This document shows positions 5,387-38,241 of a stretch of 64,000 bases of DNA, in pieces; the stretch's first letter is position 1; each line of letters begins with the position of its first letter. The notes beneath the pieces were generated by a model. The model was not told where the DNA came from and ran no database searches. It saw nothing but the letters and a program-made list of their open reading frames with translations. This DNA is from Piromyces finnis finn (taxonomy: Eukaryota; Fungi; Neocallimastigomycota). The stretch covers positions 620,001 to 684,000 of the forward strand of contig MCFH01000005.1 of NCBI GenBank assembly GCA_002104945.1, read 5' to 3'. The position numbers and the translations under genes are program-made.

Positions 5387-8300
5387 CTATTTATTACAAA
5401 TGATTTGAAGATCATTCATATCATTAAGATTGTCGGAATCATAACGATTTGAAGAATTATTAGTTTTATTATAAATATTATTAATATCATCATTATTAAT
5501 ATTGCTATTATTCATTCTATTCATAACAACTGGTGGATGATAATGAATTGATCTCTCATCATTTTCACTGCCGTAATTTAATGGAGTTAAACTTGTAGGT
5601 GTTTTAACATCAAATGAAGACATAGCTGATATAGGTGTTACATTTAAAGAAGTACTGTTATAATTTTTATCGTTTCCCATGTAAATACCTTTATCAATTC
5701 TTGACATTTCAAAATTACTTAAACTTCTACATCTATTATGTGAAATGAGTTGGTTTATATAGGTTCCATTTGTTGGTGCAGTGGTAGCAGAATTAGGTTT
5801 TATAAAAGGATTTGTATTGATATGTGTTTGAATTTGTACTTTTGAATTAATTTTGGAATTTTGTTGTTGTTGATAAGCTAATGGTTCATTAACATTCAAT
5901 TTCGAATGAGGTGAAATCATCATTGTATTCTTGGAATATGGATTTCCTGAAGAAGATGCTGATGTTGGTGTATGAACAGGTGTAGCATAAACATTTTCTA
6001 ATGTAGATGGATTTGTATTAATTGTTAATGAGGTTAATGGTGCAACTTGTTGATAAAGATATCTATTTGGAAGTTTACTTGAATTTTGTTTTGAATGTAT
6101 TTCAGAATATGGAGAAGGAATTTGTTGATTAGTCATTCCAGGGTTTTGATTTTGATTTGCTGGATAATGTTTTGACGGTGTTTGAAGATATGATGGCTTA
6201 ATAGGCAATTGAGTATTATAATTTGAAGTTGTTGGCATATAGTTTGATGAACTTGAAACATTGGATTCTAATGCTTGATTTCTTGGTAGAGTATTTGATT
6301 TTGTAATGGTTGACGGTATATTTAGATCTAAGGGTGTAAGTGATGATAAATTAGTTGAATTATAATAAGATGTATTCTTATTCTGGTTACACTTTGTGGA
6401 ATTAGCAAGGGAGGATAGTGATGGAGTAGATCTGTTCCTATTTAATGAATAAAAGAGATTAGCCTTTTGAGAGTTATTTCTATCAATTCTATTAATGTTA
6501 CTATAATACTGAGTATGTGAATGATTAGATAGATCATCGGTTGAGGTATGATTCTGTAATCTGTTACTAATATCTTCTGGAGTATGGTGTATAATATTAT
6601 TTGAAACATATTGTGTAGTATTATTTGAAGATAATAATCTTGAATCTGGATTAGAATAATCATTTGTATTCATTATATCAATACCATAAGAAACACTTTC
6701 ACCAATTGAACATTCTTTTGATCCTTCTTGATATGAAATAGATTCTGGTTCATTATATTTCTTTTTACCGCTAATTGATGGTAAAAATGATTTTGGTTTA
6801 GATATAAATTGATAAAGGGATGGAATAACACTTTGAATAACATTTTGCATACTATTGCTTCTTGAAGGCTTATTTTTTTGGAATGAATCTTTCATTTCTT
6901 GATTTTGAATATCATAATTTTCTTCTTGAGAATTAAAACTTGCCATTGAGTTATTATTCTCTTCAGTAACTGTTGTATATTTTACAGTTTGAATATTTCC
7001 ATTATTATATAATAATGGTTTTGGTGGAAGACTAATAGTTCTGCTTTTTTGTATTTTACCAGAAATAAAGGATCCATTATTATCATTATTTTTTGATTTT
7101 TCAAGTGGCGCATTAAATAAATCGATAAGTTCTTTTCTTTCTCTTTCAAATTGACTCTGACTTTTACTTAATTTTATATTTTTATTAGAAGCATGATCAT
7201 CATTATAATCAATGAATTCAGTACCTGGTATTTTTTTAATTTCATTCTTCAAATTACTTTTGGGTGAATATAAATCAGTAAAAGTGAGTTGGTTCTTTAA
7301 TCCTGAAACTCTGGAAGTAGATGAAGATCTTTTTAACGAACTTTTTAATGGCATTGTATTTAGATCATGATGAACATTTGAATACTTCATTTGCTCTTCA
7401 TTATCATGATGATGAATGCGATCATGTTTTTCTATCTTTTGTTTAGTAACTTGGAACAAGTCACTCGGAGAATCGATGGATGTTAATTTTATAGGTCTCT
7501 TTTTCTCTTCCATTATTGTTGATTCTTCATTACCTTTTAATAATTCATTATTGATGTTATTTTTGTTATTATTATTATCATTATTAATGTTATTTTTGTT
7601 ATTATTGTTATCCTTATTATTGTTGTTTTTGTTGTTGTTGGTAGTATCTAATATCATTCTACCGTTATTAGCATCATTTTGAGAATGAATATGAGATGAT
7701 AAGGAATCATTTTTATTTAATGGTTTATTTAAAACTTCTGGTTTTTTAAAATCTGGTAATACATCATGATTAATGCTTTTTGTTTTTGGAACAACAAATG
7801 GTTTGGTTTTTGGTGATTTATTTATTTTTTGCTTTCTTTGTTGTTCTTTTTCCTTTGCTTCATGATTTTTAGCCTGATTTTTAGTTTCCTGTCTTTTTTC
7901 CAAAAGTTCATTTACTTTTTGACTCAAATCAATTTTTGAAGAAAGAATTGGACTAATGAAATTAATTCTATCAGTAATGTATTTTTCCAACTCATCTAAT
8001 TCTTGCTTGTCAATAGTATGATTATATTTCATTTCACCTCCAGAAATACTTCTACTCTTATTACTAAATTTACTATATTTCTTATCAAGTTTAGTAACAA
8101 GAGATGAATCAAACTCAAGATTATCGAAAAAGTTATTCATGGGAGCAAAATACATACTATAAGTCTTAATATTAGGGGATTGATTTTCATCTACTTCATC
8201 TTCTTTAATAGTACTAATCTTTTTAAATGCGGTTTCTAAAGCATTTTCAAGCTTAAATGATTGCTTTGGTTCATTTTTATTACTCGCTTTTTGTTCTGAA

Positions 8301-11300
8301 CGATCCTTAATTTTTAATGGATCATGATCTTCGTCACTAATATCATTGAAAAGAGAATGTGCATTCTTATCATTATCCTTATGAATGAGATTACCTTCAG
8401 AATCAAATAAAAGATCATCGTCAACAACATTAGAATCGGATTGCAACTCATTACTTTTAACTTTAGAAAATAATAATGAAAGAGGCTTAAATGAGTTTGG
8501 TAATATTGGATCCAATGGTTTAGGCTTTGGCTTATGTAAATTAATAGCAAATGGTGATTCAAATTTATTAGAATCCAATAAAGATTTATTATCTTTATCA
8601 TTAGAAGATTCCTTTTTATTTTCAGTATGGTTTACTTTTGCCTTGATTTCAAGTGGTTTAGATTCTTTGATATCGGTAGGCTTTGCATCTTGGCGAATTT
8701 TATTCAATGCTTGTACTTCATTATTTAACTTTGTATTTTTTATATTATCTTTATTTTCATCAGAGTAATCTTCCTTGGAGGCGTTTCTTGCTGCGGATAC
8801 TAAATAATGTAAATTTCTTGTGGAATATTTCTTTTGAATTACATTAATTTCCTTCATTAACTCTTCGGAATATTTTGGTGATTCCATTAGTAATGACTCA
8901 GACATTCCATTAAGTGTGGAATCACTCATTAATGAATGATTATCTTTTTCTGTAATTTTTTCAGTATCTTTACTCATAATTCCACTACTTTCAATTTGAT
9001 CTTTTAAACTTGAAACTTGTCTTTCTACCTTTTTAACATTCTTTGAAATATCTTCTTTTTCAAACTTAAGTGAAGTTGTACTACCACTACTAACATCACT
9101 ATCCTTATTCCTATTATAATATTTATCCATATAAAGCTTAACATTCTCATTTGTAGTATTTGTTCTTCTATGTTCTAAATTACTTCTAAAACTAGTAGAT
9201 AATTTGATACTATTAATACAACTATTTCTAATGGATTTTTTACTAATTTGACTAAGATTATCTAAGGAATTTTTGTATTCTTCACCTTCCATTGAAGGTT
9301 GATTATGATGATGATAGTAAAATTTATTATTATGAATATATGTTCCTTTTTTAATATCAATAGCTTTTGATTCTTCTGAGGCACTAGTTTTTGTAGTAAA
9401 TGATGCTTTATTCTGTGATTCTTTTGATACTTCAGATTTTGCCTCCATAGCTGAATTATTTTTATTATTATCTTTATTTGAATTATCTACAGAAGTTGAT
9501 AAATCTTCATTAGAATAATTGCTTAAATTATATATTGTATTATTTTGACTAAAATGAGTGTGATCATTACTTTTATTTATATTAGATCCAATTGCCTCTA
9601 TAGGTTTTACCGAAGCTTCATGATTAGAAATCATTTGAGCTTTTGTTTGTGGAGGAATAATACTACTTCCATTAATTTCAGTTGGTAATGATACTAATGG
9701 TTGAGCAGTTTGACTAGACAAAGACATTTCATTCCATGTCTTTATTAAATTATTATTTACAAAGTTATCTATTGCTTTATTAGATGAATAAATATAATCT
9801 TTACCAATTGGTACAATAGGTACTTTTTCATTAACTGCTGTTGTTAAAGTAGTCATCATTGTTGTTGTTGTTATAATAGTCGAAACAACATTTGTTGATT
9901 TACTAATTGAAGATGTTGTTGTAGAAGTTAGAGAAGATACATTTGAATAATAATTAGGAATTGGTACTGATATTCTATTATTATCCAGATTATCCTGTTG
10001 TAATTGTTGTTGTAACTGCTTTTGGAAATGTTTTTGTAATTGTTGCTGTAATTTTTGTTGCAACTGTTGTTGTTGTTGTCGTAATTGTTGTTGTTGTAAT
10101 TGTTGTTGTTGTAATTGTTGCTGTTGTAATTGTTGTTGTTGTAATTGTTGTTGTTGTAATTGTTGTTGTTGTAATTGTTGTTGTTGTAATTGTTGTTGTT
10201 GTAATTGTTGTTGTTGTAATTGTTGTTGTTGTTGTAATTGTTGTTGTTGTTGTAATTGTTGTTGTTGTTGTAATTGTTGTTGTTGTTGTAATTGTTGTTG
10301 TAATTGCTGTTGTTGTTGCAATAATTTCCGTAACTCTTGAATTTGAATATGACTTGGAAGTTCTGGGTTAATTTTATATTGTTGTAATTGTTGATATAAC
10401 AAATTATTTTGAGTATCATTTACATTATTATCTGTATCATTATTTCTGTTTTGTAAAGAATTAATACTTAATTGGTTGATAAGATGAAGTATATTATTGA
10501 AATTTTCTATTCTATTGTTATCCAACGTATTTTGAGATGGTATATTAGTATTATAATAATCATTATGATTATCAATCACAGATGCTGAATTAATAGAATG
10601 GTCATTATTAGTAGTTGTATTAGTAGTTGTCGTCGAAGTAGATGCATGATAATTATTTAATTGTTGATGTAATTGTTGTTGTAAATGTTGTCTTTGTTGT
10701 TGTAACAATTGTTGTTGTTGTTGAAGTGTATTATTCTGATAATTGGTATAATCTTGCATAACTTTAGATGCCGGAATGACAACCTTCTCATATTGTTTTG
10801 AAATTATAGAATTTGTACCGTTAATATTATTCATAGCAATATTGTTTTGATTACTTTGATCAGAAATTTCATCTTTTTCTTGTATATCTGGTACCGATGG
10901 TTTAACTGAATGATAAGTTGGATAAATTGATGTTGAAGATATGCTTTCAAAATGTAACCAATCCATATACCATTCTAATTGACGTACCCAAAAGTTAAAA
11001 TTTTCTGCAGAAATCCAAACGTTATAATTTAAAGCTTTCAAGACAACTGTTTCTAAATAATTAATTTCATCAATTGGAAGTTCAGTTAAATCTTTTGCCC
11101 AAGTAATATTACGATAAGAATTATCTAAATAAACCTTATTACAAATTAATAAACAAACAAGCCAGACTTTGTATATGGATGAAAGTTTATTAAAGTATTG
11201 AGGTAATTTTGATCTCAAAATATAAAAAAAGTACAATGACATCACTGTCACCGACGTAGGTATACCAGTATGATATAAGGTATAATGAATGAATTTTCTA

Positions 11301-24390: not shown

Positions 24391-26338
24391 ATGAAATTTT
24401 ATTCAATTCTTTTATTAAGTGTAATATTAAAAAAAGGAGTTTCAGCTTTTTCCGATACTTTTATATATGAAGATGCATTTTCGAAACCACCTTTCCAGCT
24501 ATATTTTTCAGATCAATTTCTTAATGAAAAAGAATTAGAAGTATTGGTACTATATCATTATTTAGCATATTAAAGTTTGAATATACAAAAACATATTAAA
24601 TAAAGAACTTTATATTAATAAACATATAAATAAATAGTAAATAGTAATGATATTAATATTATCTATTTTTTGGTAAATAGGAAAGAGAAACAGAAAATGA
24701 AATAGTAAAAATGGTTTCTAAAGAAAATAAAGAACATTATATTTGCGAAGTGCCAAAAGTTAAGAAGAAGAAAGAAAAAGTTGTTCGAAGAAGTAATATT
24801 ACTAATGTTAAAAATGCATTATCTTTATTAGAGCCAATGAAAAATAAATGCTTATATCATGTAAATTATTATTTAATGAAATTTCTATATACTACTATTA
24901 ATAATAACAATAATAATAAAGAAAAAAGAAAAAATAAAAATAAAATTTTATTAGTTAATTATCATAAGTTAAAATTGAAATAATTTATATATATATATAT
25001 TTATATTATTTATTTTATATATTCAAAAAATGTTTATTGAAATGACATAAAATTATATAAATAAAAGACAAGTGGTTGGTGGAATTATGAATTTTGTTAT
25101 GGAAAAAGTATTCGACAGTATCATGTAGCTGGAAAGAATGAGCCAGCTAGATATAATTCAAATTATATATTGGGAAAATACACAAAATATTTAGAGTTAT
25201 CATCAGGAAAAACAGAAGAAACAAAAGATTTAGTAAGAATAACACCAACTGGTAAAAATTATTTTACTCAAAAGTTTATTGATGGTACAAAATGTGATAA
25301 AACAAATATACCAAGAACAACTGAAGTTCAAGTAATTATTATTAAATCATTTCTATAATAATAATAATAGTATTTGTGGTGATAGAATGTCATTATTTTA
25401 TTATCATTATATTAATTTCCAATTTTTTTTATTGAAGTATTATTGTGGTATCGAAGAAAGTATAATATATATTAAAGAAACCACAACTTGTAATTATGAA
25501 GTTGCAATTAGCACTAATAGACTATGTAAAGATCCTGTATTTAACCCACAGATCAATAACCCATTAAATTCAATATTATGCTATTTATATAAAAGTACTG
25601 GTAAATATAATAGATATAATATATTAATCATTATATAAGTTAATTGATAAATGAAAATAATATAATAATATAAAATAATGAAATTGTTATATTATAAACG
25701 TGAAATTATATAAATATTTAAAAATATATTTTGAAACAGATAATTCTAATGATAATAGTTTAACATCGGATGATTATTCATTTGACGATGATGAAGATAA
25801 AACAGATAATGAAAAATTGTTTGAAATCCATAAAAAATATAATAAAGGAACTATGAAAAAAGCATCAGATATTTTTAAAAATAAATATATGAAATCTTTA
25901 AATTTTAAAAATAAAAAAGTTTTAGCTAATCCTTTTTTTAAATCAAACGATGATCAAAAAAATAATATAATTAAAAAAGAACAAATTTCTAAAGAAAAAA
26001 GTAAAACTATTCAAGAACTAAATAGAAGATTAATTAAATTGATAGGTGAAAAGGAGAACAATGATGATGGTCAAAATGAAGAAGATTCAGAAACTAAAAA
26101 AGAAAAAATTAAATTAATCATGGATAAAATTAATGAATTAAGCTTGAGTAATGGAGAAGAAAAAGAAAAGAAAAAAAAAGTTAATTATCATATTTCTGAA
26201 AGTACAGCTAAAAAAGTTATTTTAGAAAATGCTTTAAAGAGAGAGGATGTAAAAAAAATTGATGATCCAGCAACAAAACATCTTGTTTTAGAAAGAATTT
26301 TAAAAGAAGAAGAAAATAAAAAAAATAACGAAAAATAA
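24391..26338 (+). CDS. YOS9: ER lectin Yos9/OS-9 homologue (MRH/PRKCSH domain), multi-exon
   Basis: Signal peptide followed by exons giving YICEVP, NALSLLEPMKNKCLY, GWWNYEFCYGKSIRQYH, YFTQKFIDGTKCDKTNIPRTTEVQ, YYCG...IKETTTCNYEVAISTNRLC, then a charged tail. Confidence 0.85.
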
Positions 26339-26997: not shown

Positions 26998-28580
26998 TTA
27001 AATAAACTTAGCACCTTTTTCTAACAGAAACATTGCAACTTTATTTTTATTTTCTTCTAATAAAATTCTTGTAATTGTTTTATTATCTTTTTTTATATTT
27101 ATATCTGCTTTATTTTCGACAAGAATTTCAACAATTTCCATATTTGGATCTTTATTCTCGCAAACAATCAATAAAGGCGTTTTCCCATCATTATCTGTTA
27201 TATTGACATCAGCTCCTTTTTCAATTAATGATATTACTTTATCTACATTATTATCCCTACATGCTTTTATTATAGGTGGTACATCCAATGCATTTAATAA
27301 TTGTATTATATTTGTATTTTTATTTTTATTTGCATAGAATAATGGGGTATAACCAAATTTATCCTTAAAATCATAATTTGCACCACATTCAATTAAATAT
27401 TTTACTATATTTTCATTGTCTTGTTTACATGCAAAATGTAATGGAGTATTGTTATTATTGTCATATACATTTATATTTATATCTTTAAAATGTTCAATTA
27501 AATATTTTACTATATTTTCATTACCCGTTTTACATTCATAATGTAATGCTGTAAGCCCATTTTTATCTCTTGTGTTGATATCAATATTTGGACGACCATT
27601 AATAATGAAATATTTAACTAAATTTTCATCATTCATCTTGCAAGCTTCGATTAAATTATTATTTATTGTTTTTTCGCTTATAAATGTTTCTTTTTTCCAA
27701 AAGTCACACAATATTTGTTTGTCTAATTTCATGGTAAGTCTTTTTAATACTGCAAATTTAAATAAATCTTCGCCTAGTTTTTCCTTCATATCCATAATCT
27801 TTTTTGCAATATTTCTTTTTGCATTACTACTCTCTATTTCAGCGAATTCATCGAATATAACTTCCTTCCCTGAAAAGTCTTTTACAATCATACACATTTT
27901 TCCATTTATTATCCTTTACATTAATAATTTAAATAATTTAAAAAATAATAAATAATTAATAATAAATAATCATTATTCATTATATATATATATATATGAT
28001 AATTAATATTTATATTTATACTTTTTTTTTTTTTTTCATTATATTAATTTAAATAAAAAACTTACTCAAATAATACTTTTTGGTTTCCAACAATTTCTAT
28101 ATTTCCTTGTTTATTCTTATTTTCCTTTAAAATATGCTGGATTAATTCAATACAATCATTAATAACTTTAAATTTATTCTTTCCTTCTTCAACAATTTTA
28201 TACAATTTGTCTTTTAATATTTCGAATAATTCAATATTCGTCTTACCGAAATGATATTTATTATCTATTAATATTGATCCAATTAATGCTTCAAAAATTT
28301 CTGATAAATATTTTGGATAATTTTCATTATTATTTGATTGTTTTACTTTTTTATATTCATGACTTATTCTCTTCTCAACCTTCATTTTTTCTATAATATC
28401 TAGACTAGCAAATAATTTAGCATAACTATTTTTTGATACAGCCATATGTTTATATTCAGTTAATTCTTTTGGCTTTGCAGTAACTCTAGTACTATAGTAA
28501 TAAATAACGGTAATTAAGTCGAGAACTGCTTCACCTACAAATTTTAAACGCTTACAACTAAAACAATAGTAATAGTAGTA

Positions 28581-28619
<39 letters not shown>

Positions 28620-31600
28620 GTAATATATAAATTATTTTTAAAAGAAAATTATTATTATTATTTTTTTTTAATCATAATTAATATTTATTATTATGTTATT
28701 ATACTTACTCACTGAGGGAGTATTTTGAATACATCTCTTTATTATAATTAATAATGGTAAACATTGATGAATTTTCTATAAATTTATGACCTAAAGTCTC
28801 TGAAACAAACTTCATGTTTTTTCTATTGACTTTAATTATACTTTTATTTATACTAGAAGGTTGCCATTTCCAATGATCAGAAAAAATATTTTTGGTACGA
28901 ATTAAAAACAATTTACTTAATTTTATTCCTTCTTCTAATGCCTTTGCTCTATCTTTTCTATATAGAGGAGGCATTTCTTTACATATATTTTCAATTGAAA
29001 ACATTATATTCCCATTCTTATATGATTTAATACCATCTTCAAAGCAAGCACCGACTAAAGCTTCATAAAAATCTGCTATAGATTTATCATCCTTATTCTT
29101 CAAAATGGGTTTTTTATCCAAATCACCAATGGTTTGTTTCATATCATAATTTGGAGGGCAAAAGTTTTTCACAGAGTATCTTTGTTTAATAGAGTATTTT
29201 TTCCAACCTAACTTATTAATTTGTTCAATTAAAAATTCATTTTTAATAAAATCATTTCTTCTATGAATGAGAAGATCTTCATTTCGATTGAAATAACAAT
29301 TAAGAATATTAAGAGAAGTTAAATATTTCAATATAGAATCACCAAGTAGTTCTAATCTTTCATGTTGTTCCCCGACTACTGGATCAGCTGATTTTGACAT
29401 ACTTGCTCTATAAATACTTTCAAGAGTTAAATGTTTCAATCCAATGTTACATCTAAATTCATCCATAAAAGTTAATATTTTGATTTTATAAGTAAATATT
29501 GGAATCAAAGTAAGAAGTTTAATCCATGCTTGGGGAACTGTAATAACACAATATAATTCTGGTATATATAAATTCTTTTTTTCTCCATTTTCATCATTTT
29601 CATCGCGTTGAAGACTATGAATAAGAGAATGGGCATCATAAGAAAATAACGGTGAGTTTTTATATTTATATTGAAAATGATCATTTACTAACTCTTTATA
29701 TTTATCTTCAAAGAAATCTTGATACGTTGTTTCTTTCTTTTCTTCTGTTTTTTTATTTAATATAAACACATCTTCTTTTCTTGCTTTTCTATCCAATCCT
29801 GTAAAAAAACAAATAGTTTTATCAAATTTGTTAATTAAGTATACTTTCTTTAATGATTTCTCAATAATATTTTGTGTTTCTTCATCCATTTTTTCTATTT
29901 CATTATTTATATCGATTATTTTTTCTATATCTTGTACATTAATGATTTTTTTGTGAAATTCTTTTAAATAATAACAATTTTCTTCAAAAGTATTATTCTC
30001 ATAATGAATGTCTTTGTTTGATTTTTTTAAAAAATAGTTAGCATAGTAAATCCAATCCCCTAATGTGATAATATTTTCATTTTGTAAATTATTCATTGTT
30101 GTATTAATATTTTTCATTATATTCCAATTAATTTCAACAGTATTATTCTTTTTTGACATTGGTATAATATAGTACATTTCATTTAATTTCTCATTTTGTG
30201 AATTATTTGATTCGCTTGGTTGAAGATTATTATTCCCAAATAGCATTTTCCATGAATGAGTTTGAAAAGTTTTTATTGTTTCTAATTCATCGTCACTGAA
30301 ATATACGGGAAGATAAGATTGACAATCACTATTGTCCAAGATAGTATCATTTGAATAAAATTTATCGCCATCATTATTATTATGGTTTTTATTAAAAATA
30401 TCGTTACAACTATTAAAATTATTAGCTTGATTATTATATTTATTCCATAGTTTTAAATGAAATTTATATTTATCATTTTTGTATTCTCTAATTTCAATAA
30501 TAGGAGTATTGGAAGGTATTGGTTTCTTGGTAATATAACCAAGACAGAGTTTAATTTTATTTGGTTGCTCGTCTGTTTTATTAATATCAATATAACAGAA
30601 TAATTCTTTTGCGTCATCAATTTCATCATTTTCTAAATATGATACAAAAAATAAATTATTCGGATTATAAAAATTATCAGGATAAAATTCTTCATTTAAA
30701 ACCCACGAATCCTTGGAAAATACATCTGGACAATAAAATGATGATTCAATTGAGGGTGGTATACCGTGACATCTTAATCCTCTTCCTTCTATTACTGGTA
30801 ATTTAATATCACCGGAATGGTACAATAATTTAAATAATAATAAATTAGCTTCACACTCGGCTTCTTCCTTCGAAATACATAAAGGTCCAACAAATTTTTG
30901 AAATTTATCAGATATGAAATATCTATTTTCAAATTTTATTTCCATGAAATAAAGTATTTGTTTTTGGTTAATATTTTTATGTTCTACGGGATGACATATT
31001 ACTGCATTAATAAACTTTATTAAATCTGATGACATATTTTTCTCTCTATATTCAATGTATTTATTTAAATTACATTCATTTATTGTGGAACTACATTTCA
31101 TTCTATTAATATACTTTTTTTTAATGAAATCGTAAGATAATTTTAAACCATAATTACTTTGTACATAATAATCCTTAATATTGAAATCTTTGGAAATGTA
31201 GTTTGATACAATGTAATCTTGAAATTCATAATAAAATTTAATAGCATCATCTTGAAAAGAAATACAAATTATTTGACCAATATTTATTTTTTCTGTTGTT
31301 TCTAATTCTATTAATTCTTTTTTAATGTCTTTGTATATATCTTCAGAGATAATTAAAATTACATCCTTGTATTCTAAATCATCATTCTTTCTTGGAATAT
31401 ACTTTGATATAAAATCATCTTTAATTAAATTAATTAACATATACTTACAATTATTGCTATAAAATACATTCATTTTATAATTGTTATCAATTTTATTTAT
31501 TTTTAAGTTATAATAAAGATCTCCGTAAAATAAATAATATTCATTAAATAATAGTAAAAATGTTACTTGGTTAGGTTCACACTTTAAATATGATATAATT

Positions 31601-34600
31601 ATATTCTTTATTTGATTGAATTTTGAATTTTTCCTTTTTTCATTTTCATCCTTCATATAACAATTATATAGGTTATAAATTTTTAAAGTATTCAGTTTCT
31701 CATTATCAAAAAGTTCAACAGGGTTCATTTTAAAACTTGAGTATATAATATTACAAAAATAATTTATAGCTTTATTAATTTTCGAATGTTTCTTAAAATT
31801 TTTAATAAAAATTTTTACTATATCATATATATGTATGTAATTGTTATCAATTTCTTGGAGGCCCATTTTATTACTGTTAATATAATTATTTTTATCTTCA
31901 AGGAATTTTATGATATCATTTTTAAAATCTCCTGTTATATTATTTCTTATGGAGCTATTTTCATAATTCTTATATAAATAAAATAAACTTGTATTATCAG
32001 TCATATTCCAGTCTGACATTTTGTTGTAATTTTCTGAATCTGATATTTTATTACAATTTTCTTGTGAATATAATATTTTCTTTCCTGATTCAATTTCTGA
32101 TGATGATGATAATGAACAAATTGAATTTGATGTATATGAACTATAATCGAAAATATTTTGATTAGAACCATTATAATCATTGCCATATACATCTTCATCT
32201 ATTTTATTTTCTTGATCGCTATTTTCAGTTTCAGAAGTTAAACTGTTTGAATCAGAACTAATTTCTGAACTATTATTACTATCATTACTTTTATTTTCTA
32301 TTTTATTAACTAATGTTGCTTTACTAAATGAGCTAAAATCACTTCTAGTATCAATGTTTTCATTCTTACCTAATGTTGTTACATGACTGCTACTAACACA
32401 TTTAGTATCATTGTTGATACTTTCATTATTATATAAATTATCATTATCACTTTCATTGTCATCTTCATCTGTTTTATTTTCTTGATCGCTATTTTCAGTT
32501 TCAGAAGTTAAACTGTTTGAATCAGAACTAATTTCTGAACTATTATTACTATCATTACTTTTATTTTCTATTTTATTAACTAATGTTGCTTTACTAAATG
32601 TGCTAAAATCACTTCTAGTATCAATGTTTTCATTCTTACCTAATGTTGTTACATGACTGCTACTAACACTTTTAGTATCATTGTTGATGATTTTATTATC
32701 ATTAAACATTATTAAATCATTTAAAATACTTTGTGTTTCACTAAACCTAATACCATTTTTTGAATTTTTATTTTCATCATTATTATCAGCATTAGTAAAT
32801 TTTACTTCGATATTATTTACTGTTATTATTTCATCTTCTATTTTTTGGATATTATTGATTTCTGCACTGTCAGTAGCATCAAAAATATTACTTTCTATAT
32901 TATATAAATTATCATTATCACTTTCATTGTCATCTTCATCTGTATTATTTTCTTGATCGCTACTTTCAGTTTCAGAAGTGAAACTGTCTAAATCAGAATC
33001 AATTTCTAAATTAACATTATTAACCTTACTTTTATTTTTTATTTTTTCATTATTACTCATTCCTTTTTCATATAACATTTTTAATACCTTTTTATCTTTT
33101 GTATATTCTAATAAGAGAAGCTCTCCATTATTATTTCTTTCATTCAAATCTGCGCCACTATCACATAAAAATTTTATCATTTCTAAATTACCGTTTATAG
33201 CTGCATAGATAATAGGTGTATATCCATTCTCATCTTTCCAGTTGATATCAACATTAACATTTTTTTCCATTATGAAGTATTCTATAATAGCCAATCTATT
33301 TTGTTTGATGGATTCTATGAATGCTAAATTAAAATTAATATTTTTAACTTTATATAAATATTTTTTAATTTTATCACTATTTGAATTAACAACTTTAACT
33401 ATTAATGAGTTATCGCTGATTTCATTTACATCAAAATGAAATTCTTTTTGGTTGATTAAATAATCAATGAGGATGTAATTTTTTTCATCTATAGCTTTAC
33501 TTAATACAATATTGAAATTAGCATTATTGAAATTTTCTTTTTTATTTTCGTCTTTAATACTTAAAGATTTATATACATAGGATTTGACTAAAATTTCTAA
33601 AATAGCAATATTATTATCTTTATCACAAATTGCTTTAGAAAGAATTATTTCTTTGTTTGGATATTCATCTAGCGATATTATATTTAATATTCTATTTGTT
33701 AAATTTCTTTCTTTCTTTTCGACAGCTACACTAAGCAGATCATACATTAAAATTCTATCTTTAATTAGTAAAGGTGACTCATTATCAAGCAAAATAATTA
33801 TTCCATCTATATTGTCATTATTCATAGCTGTTTTATACATTTTTTCATCTATTTTTATTATATTATACTTGATTATTAATTGCTCTATTTTTTTATTTGA
33901 TATTAATGTCTTTTCATGGTACAATTCCAATAAATTCAAAATACCTTTTACATTATAATTAAATTTTTGAAATATTTTTTTTAAAATAGTATTACAACCA
34001 TTTTTTATTAATTCATGAATAAGCGTAAAATCTTTTGCTAACAAGTCCATATTTGAATTTATTTTTACTTTTTCATTTTTTTCTAATTTTTTGATAGTCG
34101 AAATATCATTTATTTTACAAGCATAATATAAAATTGTATTTCCATTAGAGTCTTTCTGATTAACATCAAAATAATCTATATTCTTTAATAAAAAATCAAA
34201 TATTCTGTTAAAACCATGATTATATGAAAGAGTCAAAGGTGTATTGCCATCACAATCTTCAATATTCTTCATATTAATATTATTCCTTATTCCATATTGA
34301 ACCAATAAATATACTATATCATTAAGATCTTGATTGATTGCTTCGATTAATGGGCAATTACCACTAGCATCCTTTTCAGTTATATCAATCTTATAATTTT
34401 TCTTACTGCTAAGAAAACTGTTAATTAATTTTATAATCTCATATCTTTTTTCTCTAATAGCTAAAGATAATAATGAAATACCATCTTTATTTCTAATATT
34501 TAAATTAGCACCATTATTATACAATGTTTTAAATATATCATAATTATTACTTATATTAAAAGCAACCATTAAAGGATACTCACCATCATTACCTTTTGTA

Positions 34601-37600
34601 TTAATGATAGATGCACCTTTTTCTATTATTAAATTTTCAATGAAAGTAATTCCCTTATTTAATTTAATTCCTTTAATTAATTCATCTGAGTTTATTTTTT
34701 TCGTAAAAGAACAGTCTTTACATTGAAAATAATCTAACATTTCATGATTATTTGGTGATATATAATTTATAACAGAGCTACCCTTATTATTCTTAATTTG
34801 AATTCTTCCACCATAGTTCATTAATAAATTTACGATAGATACATTTCCATAATAAACGGCATACATTAATGCTGAATTGTCATTTTTATCAACTAAATTA
34901 ACATCCATTCCTCTTTCTAAAAGTTGTTTTACTAAAAATATCTTTTCTGTTTCTTTGAATTTTTCTGATTTTATGATAGTTATTATTGAAGTTTCACCCC
35001 TTGAATTTAATTTATTTAAAACAATTATGTTACCAGATTTTAATAACAGGTTACATATTTCTATATTTTCTTTGTAGATAGCATTGTCTAAAGGAGAATC
35101 ACCAAAAGTATTCACTGAATTAACAATATTACCATCATTCATTAGATGTTTTATAATTTCTATGTCTTCACAGTCAATTGCATCAAAAATATTATTTTTT
35201 TTAGTTTCATTTTTATTTTCATAATTATCAATAATGTTTATTTGTTCTTCTTGTATTCCTTTGCATAAATGAAAATTTTTACTTGGCTTTGCACCTTTCA
35301 TTTTTAAACTGTATTGGATATCTAACTTTCCTAATTGAATGGCATAGTCAATAGGTACAAAACTATTACTATCGCATGCATTAATGTCCGCACCATTATC
35401 AATTAAATTACTAATAACGGTTAAATAATTCATAGAAATTGCATAGATTAATGCTGAATAGCCATTACTATCAATTAAATTGATATACTCTGAGCTAGAG
35501 AACCGTTTACTAAATACTTCTTTATTTTTAAGAGAATAATACTTTGATTTAATCATAGATATAAGTGTTGTCTCTCCTCTTGAATTTCTTTTATTGATAT
35601 GAATGTTCTTACTTTCCAGTAAAATTTCCAATAATTCAAAACTTTTTTCATTAAATATTGCGTAATCTAATACTGTATCATTTGAAGTATTTCTTAAATT
35701 AACATCAGCTCCTGCTGCTATTATATATTTGACAAATTCTATATCTTCATTTTCTATAATATAAAATAAAATACTTTTTCCTGATTTATCCTTTTGATTT
35801 ATATCAAAAGTACCGCGATTTAAGAAAAATTTAAATTTTTCTATAGAAGTTTTATATAAGTAAATTAATGGGGTATCACCATTACGATCAATAATACTCA
35901 TATCGATATTATTTTTTATACCGTAGTTGATCAATTTATTTGAATAATCAATAATTACATTATTTCTGAGAACTTCAAATAATGGACAGTCTCCTCCATA
36001 ATCACGTTCTATAATATTTATTTTGATATCAGGTTTAGACAACATATTTTCTATATTTTCATAACGACCATTTTGAATAGCTATTGACAATAAAGACACA
36101 CCATGATCAGTTTTAATATTACAATTAGCTTTTATATTTAACAAATAATCAAAAATTGTTAATTTCTTTTCGTTAAATGCTGTAAAAAGGGGATAGTCTT
36201 CTCCTATATCTTTAGCATTTATAATATAATTAGCTAAATACTTATTATTATTTATAAATTCCTCGACAGAAAATTTATCTGATTCTCTTATAAGTCTGTT
36301 TAATTCTTTTATTTTTTCAGATAGATTTATATAGAAAAGACTTTCTATTATATGCCTTATTTTATTATTTTTTGCATAATCAATAGCAGTTTTACTATCA
36401 TTATTTTGATAATAGACGTTAGCACCATTTTTAATCAATTTCTCTGCAATATTTGTATACCCATATTGTAGAGCATATATTAGTGCCGAGTTACCTTTTG
36501 AATCTGTTAGATTTACATTTGCGCCTTTTGCAATTAATAATTCTACAATAGATATATTATTACTTTCAATTGCTATAAATAATGGATATTTTCCATTAAT
36601 ATCTTCAATATTAATGATAAAAGGATTCGATTTAATTATATATTTTACTAAATCTATTCTATTAAATTGTATTGCCGAGTTTAACTCCATTATATTTAAA
36701 AATATTCTATTCATATCCATAATCCAATAAGGGTACTTATTATTATCAAAGTTTTTATTAGCTTTGATAATTGACCATATAATATCATTATTATTTTTTT
36801 CTATTGCTAAACTAAGTGCTGATTTTCTATTATTATTAATATGATAAAAGTATTCAAGTTTATTGACTTGAGTAATGATATTAATAATATATTTTGCTAC
36901 ATCAAATTTATTATTTTCAATCGAAAATAACAATGCATTATTTCTAAACTTTGAATCTTCATAATTCAACATCGAAATTATATCCTGTACAACATTCATT
37001 AATTTTTCAAATATTAAATAGTCCGATAAAATAGCTAAAAATAATGGTGATTCACCTTCTTTGTTTTCTATTGTAAGATATTCTAAAGCATAATATTCAC
37101 CTACAATTGTAGTAACACTATATATATCTTTATTCTTACATGAATAATGTAGAGCTGTATTATAAGACATATCTCGGGTATATAATTTTGATCCATGGTC
37201 TATTAATACTTTAACAATATCCGAATGACTATATTTAGATGCTACAATTAATGGAGTTAAACCTTTATTATTCTTGGTTTCTAGATATGCATTATGTTTA
37301 ATTAAATAGTTAACAATAGAAATATTATTATTTTCACATGCATATATTAAAGGGGTATTTTCATTATTGTCTGAAATATTAACATTACAATTTTCTAAGC
37401 ATTTAACAAATTGAATATCATAATTATTTTTACATATTATAATCAATAATGTTTCTCCTTGTTCATTTTGATAATCAACATTAAAACTTTTATCATGAAT
37501 ATATGTAGTAATATCATTAACTTTTCCACCATTATTTAATATTTTTATTATAGATTCAAATATATTCTTTGTTTTATTTTTTTCATTTTCTTCATCATCT

Positions 37601-38241
37601 TCACATTTACTTATAGATTCAAATACATTCTTTGTTTCATTTCTTTTATTCTTTTCATCATCTTCACATTTACTTTTATCTTCTTTGAAAGAAGAGTTAT
37701 TTAAATTAAAATTTTGTATATTACTATCTTCAACTTTTTCTTTTAATTTGTATAACTCATTTTTCATATTAAAATCATTATTATCAAATTTTAAAAAAAA
37801 AGCTGTATTATCCTTTTCATTATTAAAAAGTTTTATTGATTCTTCTTTAATACTGAAACAAGTTAATAATTCTGTTTTTAATTTTAAAAAATTTGGTGTT
37901 AATTCTTTATTTTTAAATATTGGAGAATTTGATATTATAATATAACTCTTTTGTTGTTCCCTTAAAATAGGATTTTTAAAGTATTCTAAATATTGTAAGA
38001 AGTCATCAATATAAAGAAAAATAAGTAATTTTGCTGAAATTTGATAGTTGGGATGATATTTTTTATATTCATCAATACGATAAAATTCTATATTGTCAAA
38101 TTCTTTTAATTCATCCAAATATATATATTCTTTTTGGAAATAACTATATATTATATGAATTTTGTTAAATTTTTTATAAATCCCTTTTATAAAATCTTTA
38201 CAATTATTTTCTTTAGTTATTATTAGAAAATTATAGTCCAT
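26998..38241 (-). CDS. Ankyrin-repeat/Dicer-like fusion protein; 3 exons (38241-28709, 28557-28066, 27913-26998), predicted 3646 aa
   Basis: Both track ORF stops overlap GA|GTAAGT donors (28708, 28065). The phase-2 acceptors ttttag|T (28557) and aag|G (27913) restore frame, giving 10941 nt = 3647 codons. Domains seen: about 30 ANK repeats (about 37480-33050), a DUF283-like segment (GPLCISKEEAECEANLLLFKLLYHSGDI), a PAZ-like segment (TTYQDFFEDKY...LYIPELYCV), RNase IIIa (ERLELLGDS...IADFYEALVGA), RNase IIIb (KRLKFVGEAVLD...LSEIFEALIGSI), a dsRBD-like segment (SSNAKRNIAKKIM) and about 7 C-terminal ANK repeats. Confidence 0.88.
32190..32700 (-). repeat. In-frame tandem duplication, 270-nt (90-aa) period, within the Dicer-fusion ORF
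   Basis: The string atcagaactaatttctgaactattattactatcattac occurs at 32251 and 32521, and the peptide SSSHVTTLGKNENIDTRSDFS...SETENSDQENK occurs twice. A partial third copy lies near 32900-32990. Confidence 0.95.

Follow-up and report, generated by a model that had tools for sequence, protein, structure and literature searches.

What becomes of a Dicer-type enzyme in which only one of the two RNase III centres keeps its canonical residues? This question is raised by a gene of Piromyces finnis (Neocallimastigomycota) located on the minus strand of contig MCFH01000005.1 (assembly GCA_002104945.1), within the 64,000-nucleotide stretch from position 620,001 to 684,000, which is referred to here as the window and to which all coordinates given for this gene relate. 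The encoded protein carries two tandem RNase III domains, designated RNase IIIa and RNase IIIb (PF00636 detected twice), in one chain, as do Dicer-like proteins. Our analysis revealed that it is, by descent and fold, a Dicer-like paralogue rather than a canonical two-centre Dicer, and that its second centre has been altered in the same way in all of the orthologues found. It probably functions as a strand-asymmetric enzyme, with a sister paralogue performing ordinary dicing.

The two domains and the residues of the second centre are located as follows:

29035 to 29361, minus strand: RNase IIIa (PF00636, exon 1 residues 2961-3069, E 4.6e-14)
28260 to 28550, minus strand: RNase IIIb (PF00636, exon 2 residues 3-99, E 1.5e-14)
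28542 to 28544, minus strand: RNase IIIb, E replaced by K, equivalent to E. coli E41 and human E1705
28530 to 28532, minus strand: RNase IIIb, D replaced by E, equivalent to D45 and D1709
28431 to 28433, minus strand: RNase IIIb, N replaced by K, equivalent to human N1742, the fifth position of the changed site
28311 to 28313, minus strand: RNase IIIb, catalytic Lys retained (human K1806), four residues before the second acidic pair
28299 to 28301, minus strand: RNase IIIb, D replaced by E, equivalent to D114 and D1810
28290 to 28292, minus strand: RNase IIIb, E retained, equivalent to E117 and E1813

The centre of RNase IIIa is canonical (E/D/D/E), with ERLELLGDS at 29361-29335 and ADFYE at 29076-29062 of the minus strand, which bears out the earlier note on this DNA, according to which all four acidic positions are intact. 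This domain also contains the N of FIKN and the block K-S-I-A-D-F-Y-E, and its complete set (E/D/N/K/D/E) is identical to that of the 41 outgroup Dicers, i.e. 41 other two-domain eukaryotic Dicer-like proteins taken from the exhaustive search described below.

In RNase IIIb the corresponding motifs are KRLKFVGEA (28553-28527, minus strand) and SEIFE (28304-28290, minus strand). HMMER pairs KRLKFVGEAVLDL and LSEIFEALIGSI residue by residue with ERLEFLGDAVLDL and LSDALEAIIGAI of the RNase III of Campylobacter jejuni (3o2r). The alignment of the motifs is free of gaps, both with ERLEFLGDA and SDALE of C. jejuni and with QRLEFLGDA of human Dicer RNase IIIb (2eb1), so that the substitutions can be assigned to the E. 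coli and human positions listed above. It confirmed the reading of the earlier note (E to K, D to E and D to E, with the last E retained), which had overlooked the N-to-K change at the fifth position and the sister paralogue with an intact RNase IIIb. In total, four of the six residues of the second catalytic centre are replaced, and the catalytic Lys and the last Glu are retained. The four acidic ligands E/D/D/E of a canonical Dicer are thus present in RNase IIIa and not in RNase IIIb, whose pocket, judged by residue count, would shift from a net charge of -3 to 0.

When the 829 C-terminal residues encoded by exon 1 were used in a word search, three proteins (47-66% identity) were identified; they are designated here, like the other sequences, by P (protein) or L (DNA) numbers:

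P0001: 66% identity, metagenome (DNA: L001)
P0002: 49% identity, Anaeromyces robustus BCR32DRAFT_250662 (DNA: L004)
P0003: 47% identity, metagenome (DNA: L002)

The exhaustive search gave 607 matches at E up to 1e-3. These comprised a tight family (E up to 1e-27), followed by a gap to about 1e-16; the matches outside the family were all two-domain eukaryotic proteins sharing about 30% identity. One group of the family, designated clade A, contains eight sequences: that of the window, L001, P0002 of A. robustus, P0003, P0004, P0005, P0172 and P0173, the last being model Orpsp1_1 from an Orpinomyces / Pecoramyces genome. All eight possess K/E/K/E/E in RNase IIIb together with an intact RNase IIIa. 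The RNase IIIb columns of the outgroup are E in 41/41 proteins, D in 41/41, N in 36/41, K in 40/41, D in 40/41 and E in 40/41.

Comparison of the orthologues revealed 64-79% identity in RNase IIIb and 64-85% in RNase IIIa. The dN/dS values calculated by the NG86 method are 0.21-0.32 for RNase IIIb and 0.10-0.26 for RNase IIIa; the pairwise dS values (0.6-1.9, two undefined) are near saturation, and more weight was therefore placed on the codon model and on amino acid conservation. The GY codon model gave an omega of 0.026 for RNase IIIb and 0.029 for RNase IIIa. Within the motif blocks, the Arg, Val, Leu and Ser codons vary synonymously between species around unchanged residues. The codons of the pocket residues are GAA or AAA in all of the taxa, as expected from the AT bias, and are uninformative on selection. 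Purifying selection thus acts on RNase IIIb no less strongly than on RNase IIIa, and the domain is not decaying. The check proposed in the earlier note, whether orthologues share the RNase IIIb substitutions with dN/dS below 1, was thus answered in the affirmative, none of the eight having an intact RNase IIIb, and its argument against decay was upheld.

The family also contains a second group (clade B), whose RNase IIIb carries QRLEFLGDA or QCLEFLGDA together with ADLFE. Its members, as known here, are P0007 (Piromyces sp. E2 OUM64878.1), P0010 (A. robustus ORX76531.1, annotated as 'ribonuclease III') and the metagenome pieces P0008 and P0033. In A. robustus (ORX76531.1 with locus L006) and Piromyces sp. 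E2 (OUM64878.1) the RNase IIIb centre is E/D/N/D/E. The annotated A. robustus protein (257 aa) is merely the tail of a larger Dicer-like gene, located at 6906-11282 of L006 (MCFG01000293.1), in which two unannotated open reading frames (ORFs; 6906-7487 and 7955-10021) upstream of ORX76531.1 encode a DUF283-like segment, a platform/PAZ-like part and an intact RNase IIIa. No ORF of at least 70 aa encoding ankyrin (ANK) repeats was found within about 2.9 kb upstream of this gene. The intron between its RNase IIIa and RNase IIIb occupies the same site in the same phase (phase 2) as that of the window gene.

Clades A and B are collinear from the DUF283-like segment to the double-stranded RNA-binding domain (dsRBD), and their RNase III domains are 33-47% identical. 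In the maximum-likelihood tree they form one branch among the 41 Dicer-like proteins (SH-aLRT 100 for A+B, 100 for A and 98 for B), and the tip branches of clade A (0.01-0.18) are shorter than those of clade B (0.37-0.52). Since A. robustus holds both copies, the duplication is older than the split of Anaeromyces from the lineage of the window. A composition screen and a name look-up of AT-rich matches revealed no named anaerobic-fungus protein representing a third, helicase-bearing Dicer. The state shared by all eight clade A sequences, the omega values far below 1 and the sister group with an intact RNase IIIb together indicate a fixed, paralogue-specific remodelling rather than decay or sequencing error.

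The assignment to Dicers rests on the tree, in which the protein is placed with Dicer-like proteins, and on the predicted fold. The AlphaFold2 (AF2) model of the RNase III module of the A. robustus orthologue (P0002:1775-2310, from an alignment of 47 rows) has a pLDDT of 86.6 and a pTM of 0.83. The dicing state of mammalian Dicer (512 columns, E 2.4e-12) is among its best Foldseek matches, together with DCL4, DCL3, Dcr-2 and Drosha; the alignments extend over about 510 columns. RNase IIIa and RNase IIIb are accordingly predicted, on the orthologue model, to fold into a single intramolecular processing centre with a dsRBD behind it. The parts of the protein adjoining this module are the following:

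29362 to 31479, minus strand: Dicer core upstream of RNase IIIa, comprising a dsRBD-like segment of DUF283 type, a putative platform, a PAZ-like part and a putative connector helix (landmarks: VGPLCISK, 30868-30891; platform GYITKKPIP, 30514-30540; connector helix IPELYCV, 29545-29565)
27772 to 28085, minus strand: dsRBD-like beta-beta-beta-alpha unit, split by intron 2 (in the orthologue AF2 model, strands at 460-490 and helix at 495-510, pLDDT 82-92)

A Pfam scan of the window protein at E up to 0.1 did not detect the dsrm and PAZ families, and a single-sequence PDB search with the region preceding RNase IIIa gave no match. The family profile, when compared with the PDB, produced a weak match to the platform-PAZ-connector of human Dicer (4ngb, E 0.008, three collinear pieces), as well as matches to DCL3 and the PAZ of Piwi. 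The model of the same region is of low confidence (pLDDT 55); its top 40 Foldseek matches, all Dicers or Drosha and including 4ngb (TMt 0.44-0.46), are suggestive of a Dicer core. Over the 3178 aa scanned with Pfam, no helicase family appeared at E up to 0.1, and the low-confidence model has only faint Foldseek matches to the Dicer helicase (E about 0.09). The helicase domain is missing from many Dicer-like proteins.

The gene, which lies in a very AT-rich region (~20% GC), was assembled from ORFs and splice signals, beginning with a minus-strand ORF of 3178 codons (38241-28705) that is followed by two shorter ORFs. Its structure is as follows:

26998 to 38241, minus strand: whole Dicer-like gene, three exons, spliced product of 3646 aa
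28709 to 38241, minus strand: exon 1, 3177 codons plus 2 bases, ending AGT GA / GTAAGT (same donor in L001 and in A. robustus L004)
28558 to 28708, minus strand: intron 1, 151 nt, GT-AG, phase 2, between RNase IIIa and RNase IIIb, ending TAG and holding an (ATT)n run
28066 to 28557, minus strand: exon 2, the entire RNase IIIb domain and a long helix, ending TTT GA/GTAAGT
27914 to 28065, minus strand: intron 2, 152 nt, GT-AG, phase 2, splitting the dsRBD-like part (same site in L001, L002 and L004)
26998 to 27913, minus strand: exon 3, the last part of the dsRBD-like fold, the C-terminal ANK array (Ank_2, E 1.2e-39; about 27022-27654) and the stop codon

The spliced coding sequence (10941 nt) is in frame and has a single terminal stop. 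It encodes, in order, N-terminal ANK arrays, an acidic/Ser-rich linker, the Dicer core, RNase IIIa, RNase IIIb, the dsRBD-like fold and a C-terminal ANK array. The earlier note had assumed a frame that stays open through RNase IIIb, the dsRBD and the C-terminal ANKs; this was incorrect, as two introns (28708-28558 and 28065-27914) interrupt it and RNase IIIb occupies a separate exon. The intron 1 junction is confirmed by P0003, from a species without this intron, which reads straight through in one ORF: the window junction (...SLSD/CKRLKF) matches its uninterrupted ...DKSDCKRLKF. L001 and the A. robustus locus (L004) share both introns with the window, at identical sites and in the same phase.

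The intron between RNase IIIa and RNase IIIb occurs in both paralogues (window, L001, L004 and L006) and is absent from the P0003 species (L002 7984-17508), which points to its lineage-specific loss there. A metagenome contig of 1.5 kb (L007, 1-1510) contains a clade A orthologue devoid of either intron and diverges, after about position 1268, into an unrelated reverse-strand ORF. Judging by its sequence, L007 may be cDNA, i.e. a spliced transcript assembled as a chimera.

Pfam detects ankyrin families across the first 1700 residues of the window protein and again in exon 3. N-terminal ANK arrays are found in all of the full-length clade A proteins. The C-terminal array is restricted to the window (26998-27654, about 210 aa) and L001 (11384-12643, about 340 aa); in A. 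robustus and in P0003 the orthologous protein stops shortly past the dsRBD-like fold (P0003: L002 17857-18070). In P0003 the ANK array is preceded by ~20 repeats, each of about 35 residues and rich in Ser, Asp, Glu and Lys (…NESY.TSSS.SDS..SEDEK..KPKK…; residues about 170-950, L002 about 8500-10800), a block that the window protein does not possess. In the window protein, the acidic/Ser-rich linker that separates the ANK arrays from the Dicer core contains a 90-residue unit, VSSSHVTTLGKNENIDTRSDFS..., twice in tandem (minus strand, 32128-32667; residues about 1859-2038 of exon 1). The two copies are near-identical over about 70 residues, and this looks like a recent internal duplication. A Lys/Glu/Asn-rich ORF of 212 aa (25700-26338, plus strand) is situated downstream of the gene on the opposite strand.

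In Dicer, each RNase III domain cuts one strand, RNase IIIa acting on the 3′ arm and RNase IIIb on the 5′ arm (PMC7827160). Mg A is bound by E1705, D1810 and E1813 and Mg B by D1709 and E1813, and N1742 is counted as part of the active site (PMC13334501). E1705K and D1709E are recurrent DICER1 hotspot substitutions that affect metal ligands, and RNase IIIb activity was lowered when any one of the four ligands was mutated (PMC3503615). Dicer mutated in RNase IIIb cuts only the 3p arm; the precursors are left nicked, and AGO takes up their 3p strand (PMC12700799). Of the E. coli mutants, D45E, E41A and D114A show no more than weak activity, and this in excess Mg (PMC8708148, Table 1). By analogy with these human and bacterial mutants, the single-strand nicking proposed in the earlier note may apply to the clade A protein. 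The three ligand changes of clade A and the N-to-K change fall within one pocket, and we infer that canonical cleavage of the second strand has been lost or strongly reduced.

A conserved, selected and remodelled RNase IIIb beside an intact RNase IIIa would make the clade A protein a strand-asymmetric Dicer, with the sister paralogue available for ordinary dicing; of the explanations considered here, this is the one that we hold to be probable, albeit with reserve. The gene is one of two Dicer-like paralogues of Neocallimastigomycota, which share the core and the IIIa/IIIb intron. After the duplication, clade A gained its large ankyrin arrays and four residues of its RNase IIIb pocket were replaced; according to the proposed mechanism, the remodelled pocket would lose the binding of the two Mg2+ needed for canonical cleavage. 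RNase IIIa alone would cut the strand whose 3′ end sits in the PAZ-like module, and RNase IIIb would stay as the obligatory dimer partner and a surface for RNA binding. Cleavage would thus leave a nicked duplex or hairpin, with one strand loadable into Argonaute, and ordinary dicing would fall to clade B. As the sister paralogue keeps an intact RNase IIIb, production of small interfering RNA (siRNA) duplexes need not depend on the clade A protein.

Several observations weigh against a strand-asymmetric Dicer, and they favour an RNase IIIb which is remodelled and still catalytic, i.e. one that uses metals differently, has another geometry or acts on single-stranded RNA (ssRNA), and which either cuts both strands or has acquired a new specificity, so that the protein would be no nickase. 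R3B2 of Mucor, with N/E/E/D at the same four positions (N52/E56/E113/D116 for E40/D44/D107/E110), is an active nuclease on ssRNA (PMC8136814). The three E. coli single mutants mentioned above retain weak activity when Mg is in excess (PMC8708148, Table 1). Three acidic residues and the catalytic Lys remain in the RNase IIIb of the clade A proteins, invariant in 8/8 orthologues, and the domain is as tightly constrained as RNase IIIa. On the other hand, R3B2 has not been reported to carry the two extra lysines that clade A has in place of E41/E1705 and N1742, and E1705K by itself is a loss-of-function hotspot in human Dicer. The whole RNase IIIb motif block is conserved, so the invariance is not peculiar to the pocket residues, and the protein groups with Dicers and not with R3B2. 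We consider a catalytic RNase IIIb unlikely, while treating it as a serious competitor. It follows from the R3B2 example that the earlier description of the domain as 'apparently dead' was too strong, as Glu at both Asp positions is compatible with RNA cutting; the loss of three canonical ligands on which that description was based stands.

A protein with no nuclease function, serving as an RNA-binding scaffold on which the ankyrin arrays assemble partners and in which RNase IIIa is kept but unused for cutting, is in our opinion improbable. The core is indeed flanked by huge ANK arrays, and some RNase III-like domains, e.g. that of KREPB4, are structurally essential without being catalytic (PMC11033214). 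However, the six active-site residues of RNase IIIa are canonical in every orthologue, matching 41/41 outgroups, and its omega is as low as that given above; the retention of a complete catalytic centre over such divergence would be surprising in a protein that is a scaffold and nothing else. Still less credible, to the point of being negligible, is an artefact or decay (a sequencing error, a strain-specific pseudogene or mis-splicing) that mimics a degenerate RNase IIIb. In its favour, RNase IIIb occupies a separate exon that starts where an intron ends, but the same residues occur in eight independent sequences from several species and sources, an intron-less orthologue spans the predicted junction, neither intron is present in L007, and the omega values lie far below 1. 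Decay or sequencing error was rejected on the basis of this orthologue comparison. As an extension of the strand-asymmetric Dicer, we tentatively raise a further possibility, itself rather unlikely, namely that the K/E/K/E/E pocket, neutral in charge, is not dead and has been selected as a new device that clamps or differently processes the second strand, which would allow this ankyrin-tethered Dicer to produce strand-specific guides directly from nicked duplexes or hairpins.

To our knowledge, Dicers of which one half is dead have been described chiefly as mutants in human tumours. In the gut fungi, evolution appears to have fixed a tumour-type RNase IIIb change across a fungal lineage, beside a canonical copy. 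Such a protein would offer a natural system for studying the role of a one-centre Dicer, including strand-selective small RNAs, nicked intermediates and the tethering of RNA by ankyrin arrays. If the pocket does prove to be a new device, it would constitute a natural, lineage-wide counterpart of the DICER1-syndrome enzyme, which would operate its own small-RNA pathway in parallel with canonical dicing, in fungi without an RNA-dependent RNA polymerase (RdRP). Anaerobic gut fungi have Argonaute and QIP and no RdRP, and the knock-down performed in them used synthetic siRNA (PMC5796279). The 'Dicer' counted in their genomes in that study would correspond to at least two functionally different genes. 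This is relevant to the development of RNA interference (RNAi) tools in these biotechnologically important fungi, synthetic siRNA being a means of bypassing Dicer. Our literature search found nothing published in which the Dicers of anaerobic gut fungi were tested, and no paper joining Dicer, ankyrin repeats and anaerobic fungi.

Among known systems, the clade A protein resembles (i) the human DICER1 RNase IIIb hotspot mutants (E1705K, D1709E/N/G, D1810x, E1813x), which are altered at the same positions with RNase IIIa intact; two of the gut-fungus changes, those to K at E1705 and to E at D1709, are identical to DICER1 hotspots. The DICER1 mutants, however, carry single-residue changes in somatic or mosaic disease, whereas in the gut fungi four pocket residues are changed, fixed in the lineage and maintained under purifying selection, in a protein that bears ankyrin arrays and coexists with a canonical copy. 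It also resembles (ii) R3B2 of Mucor lusitanicus, a component of the non-canonical RNAi of an early-diverging fungus, in having Glu at both Asp positions and a non-acidic first position (PMC8136814). R3B2 has one RNase III domain and two dsRBDs, acts as a homodimer on ssRNA and carries Asn at the first position, in contrast to the clade A RNase IIIb, which is one half of a Dicer and has Lys there. With two RNase III domains in one chain and K at the first position, the window protein is not of the R3B2 type, and no R3B2 chain was present among its PDB sequence matches at E up to 0.01.

The RNase III pairs of the trypanosome editosome cut only one strand. In these pairs, (iii) an active RNase III (KREN1-3) is joined with a non-catalytic and still essential partner of the KREPB4 type (PMC11033214), and the RNase IIIb of clade A, with its lost ligands and putative loss of activity, would resemble partner domains of the KREPB4, RNC1 and MRPL44 type. 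The editosome proteins are separate polypeptides with zinc fingers, acting within a mitochondrial editing complex, whereas the gut fungi carry both halves in a single Dicer-type chain.

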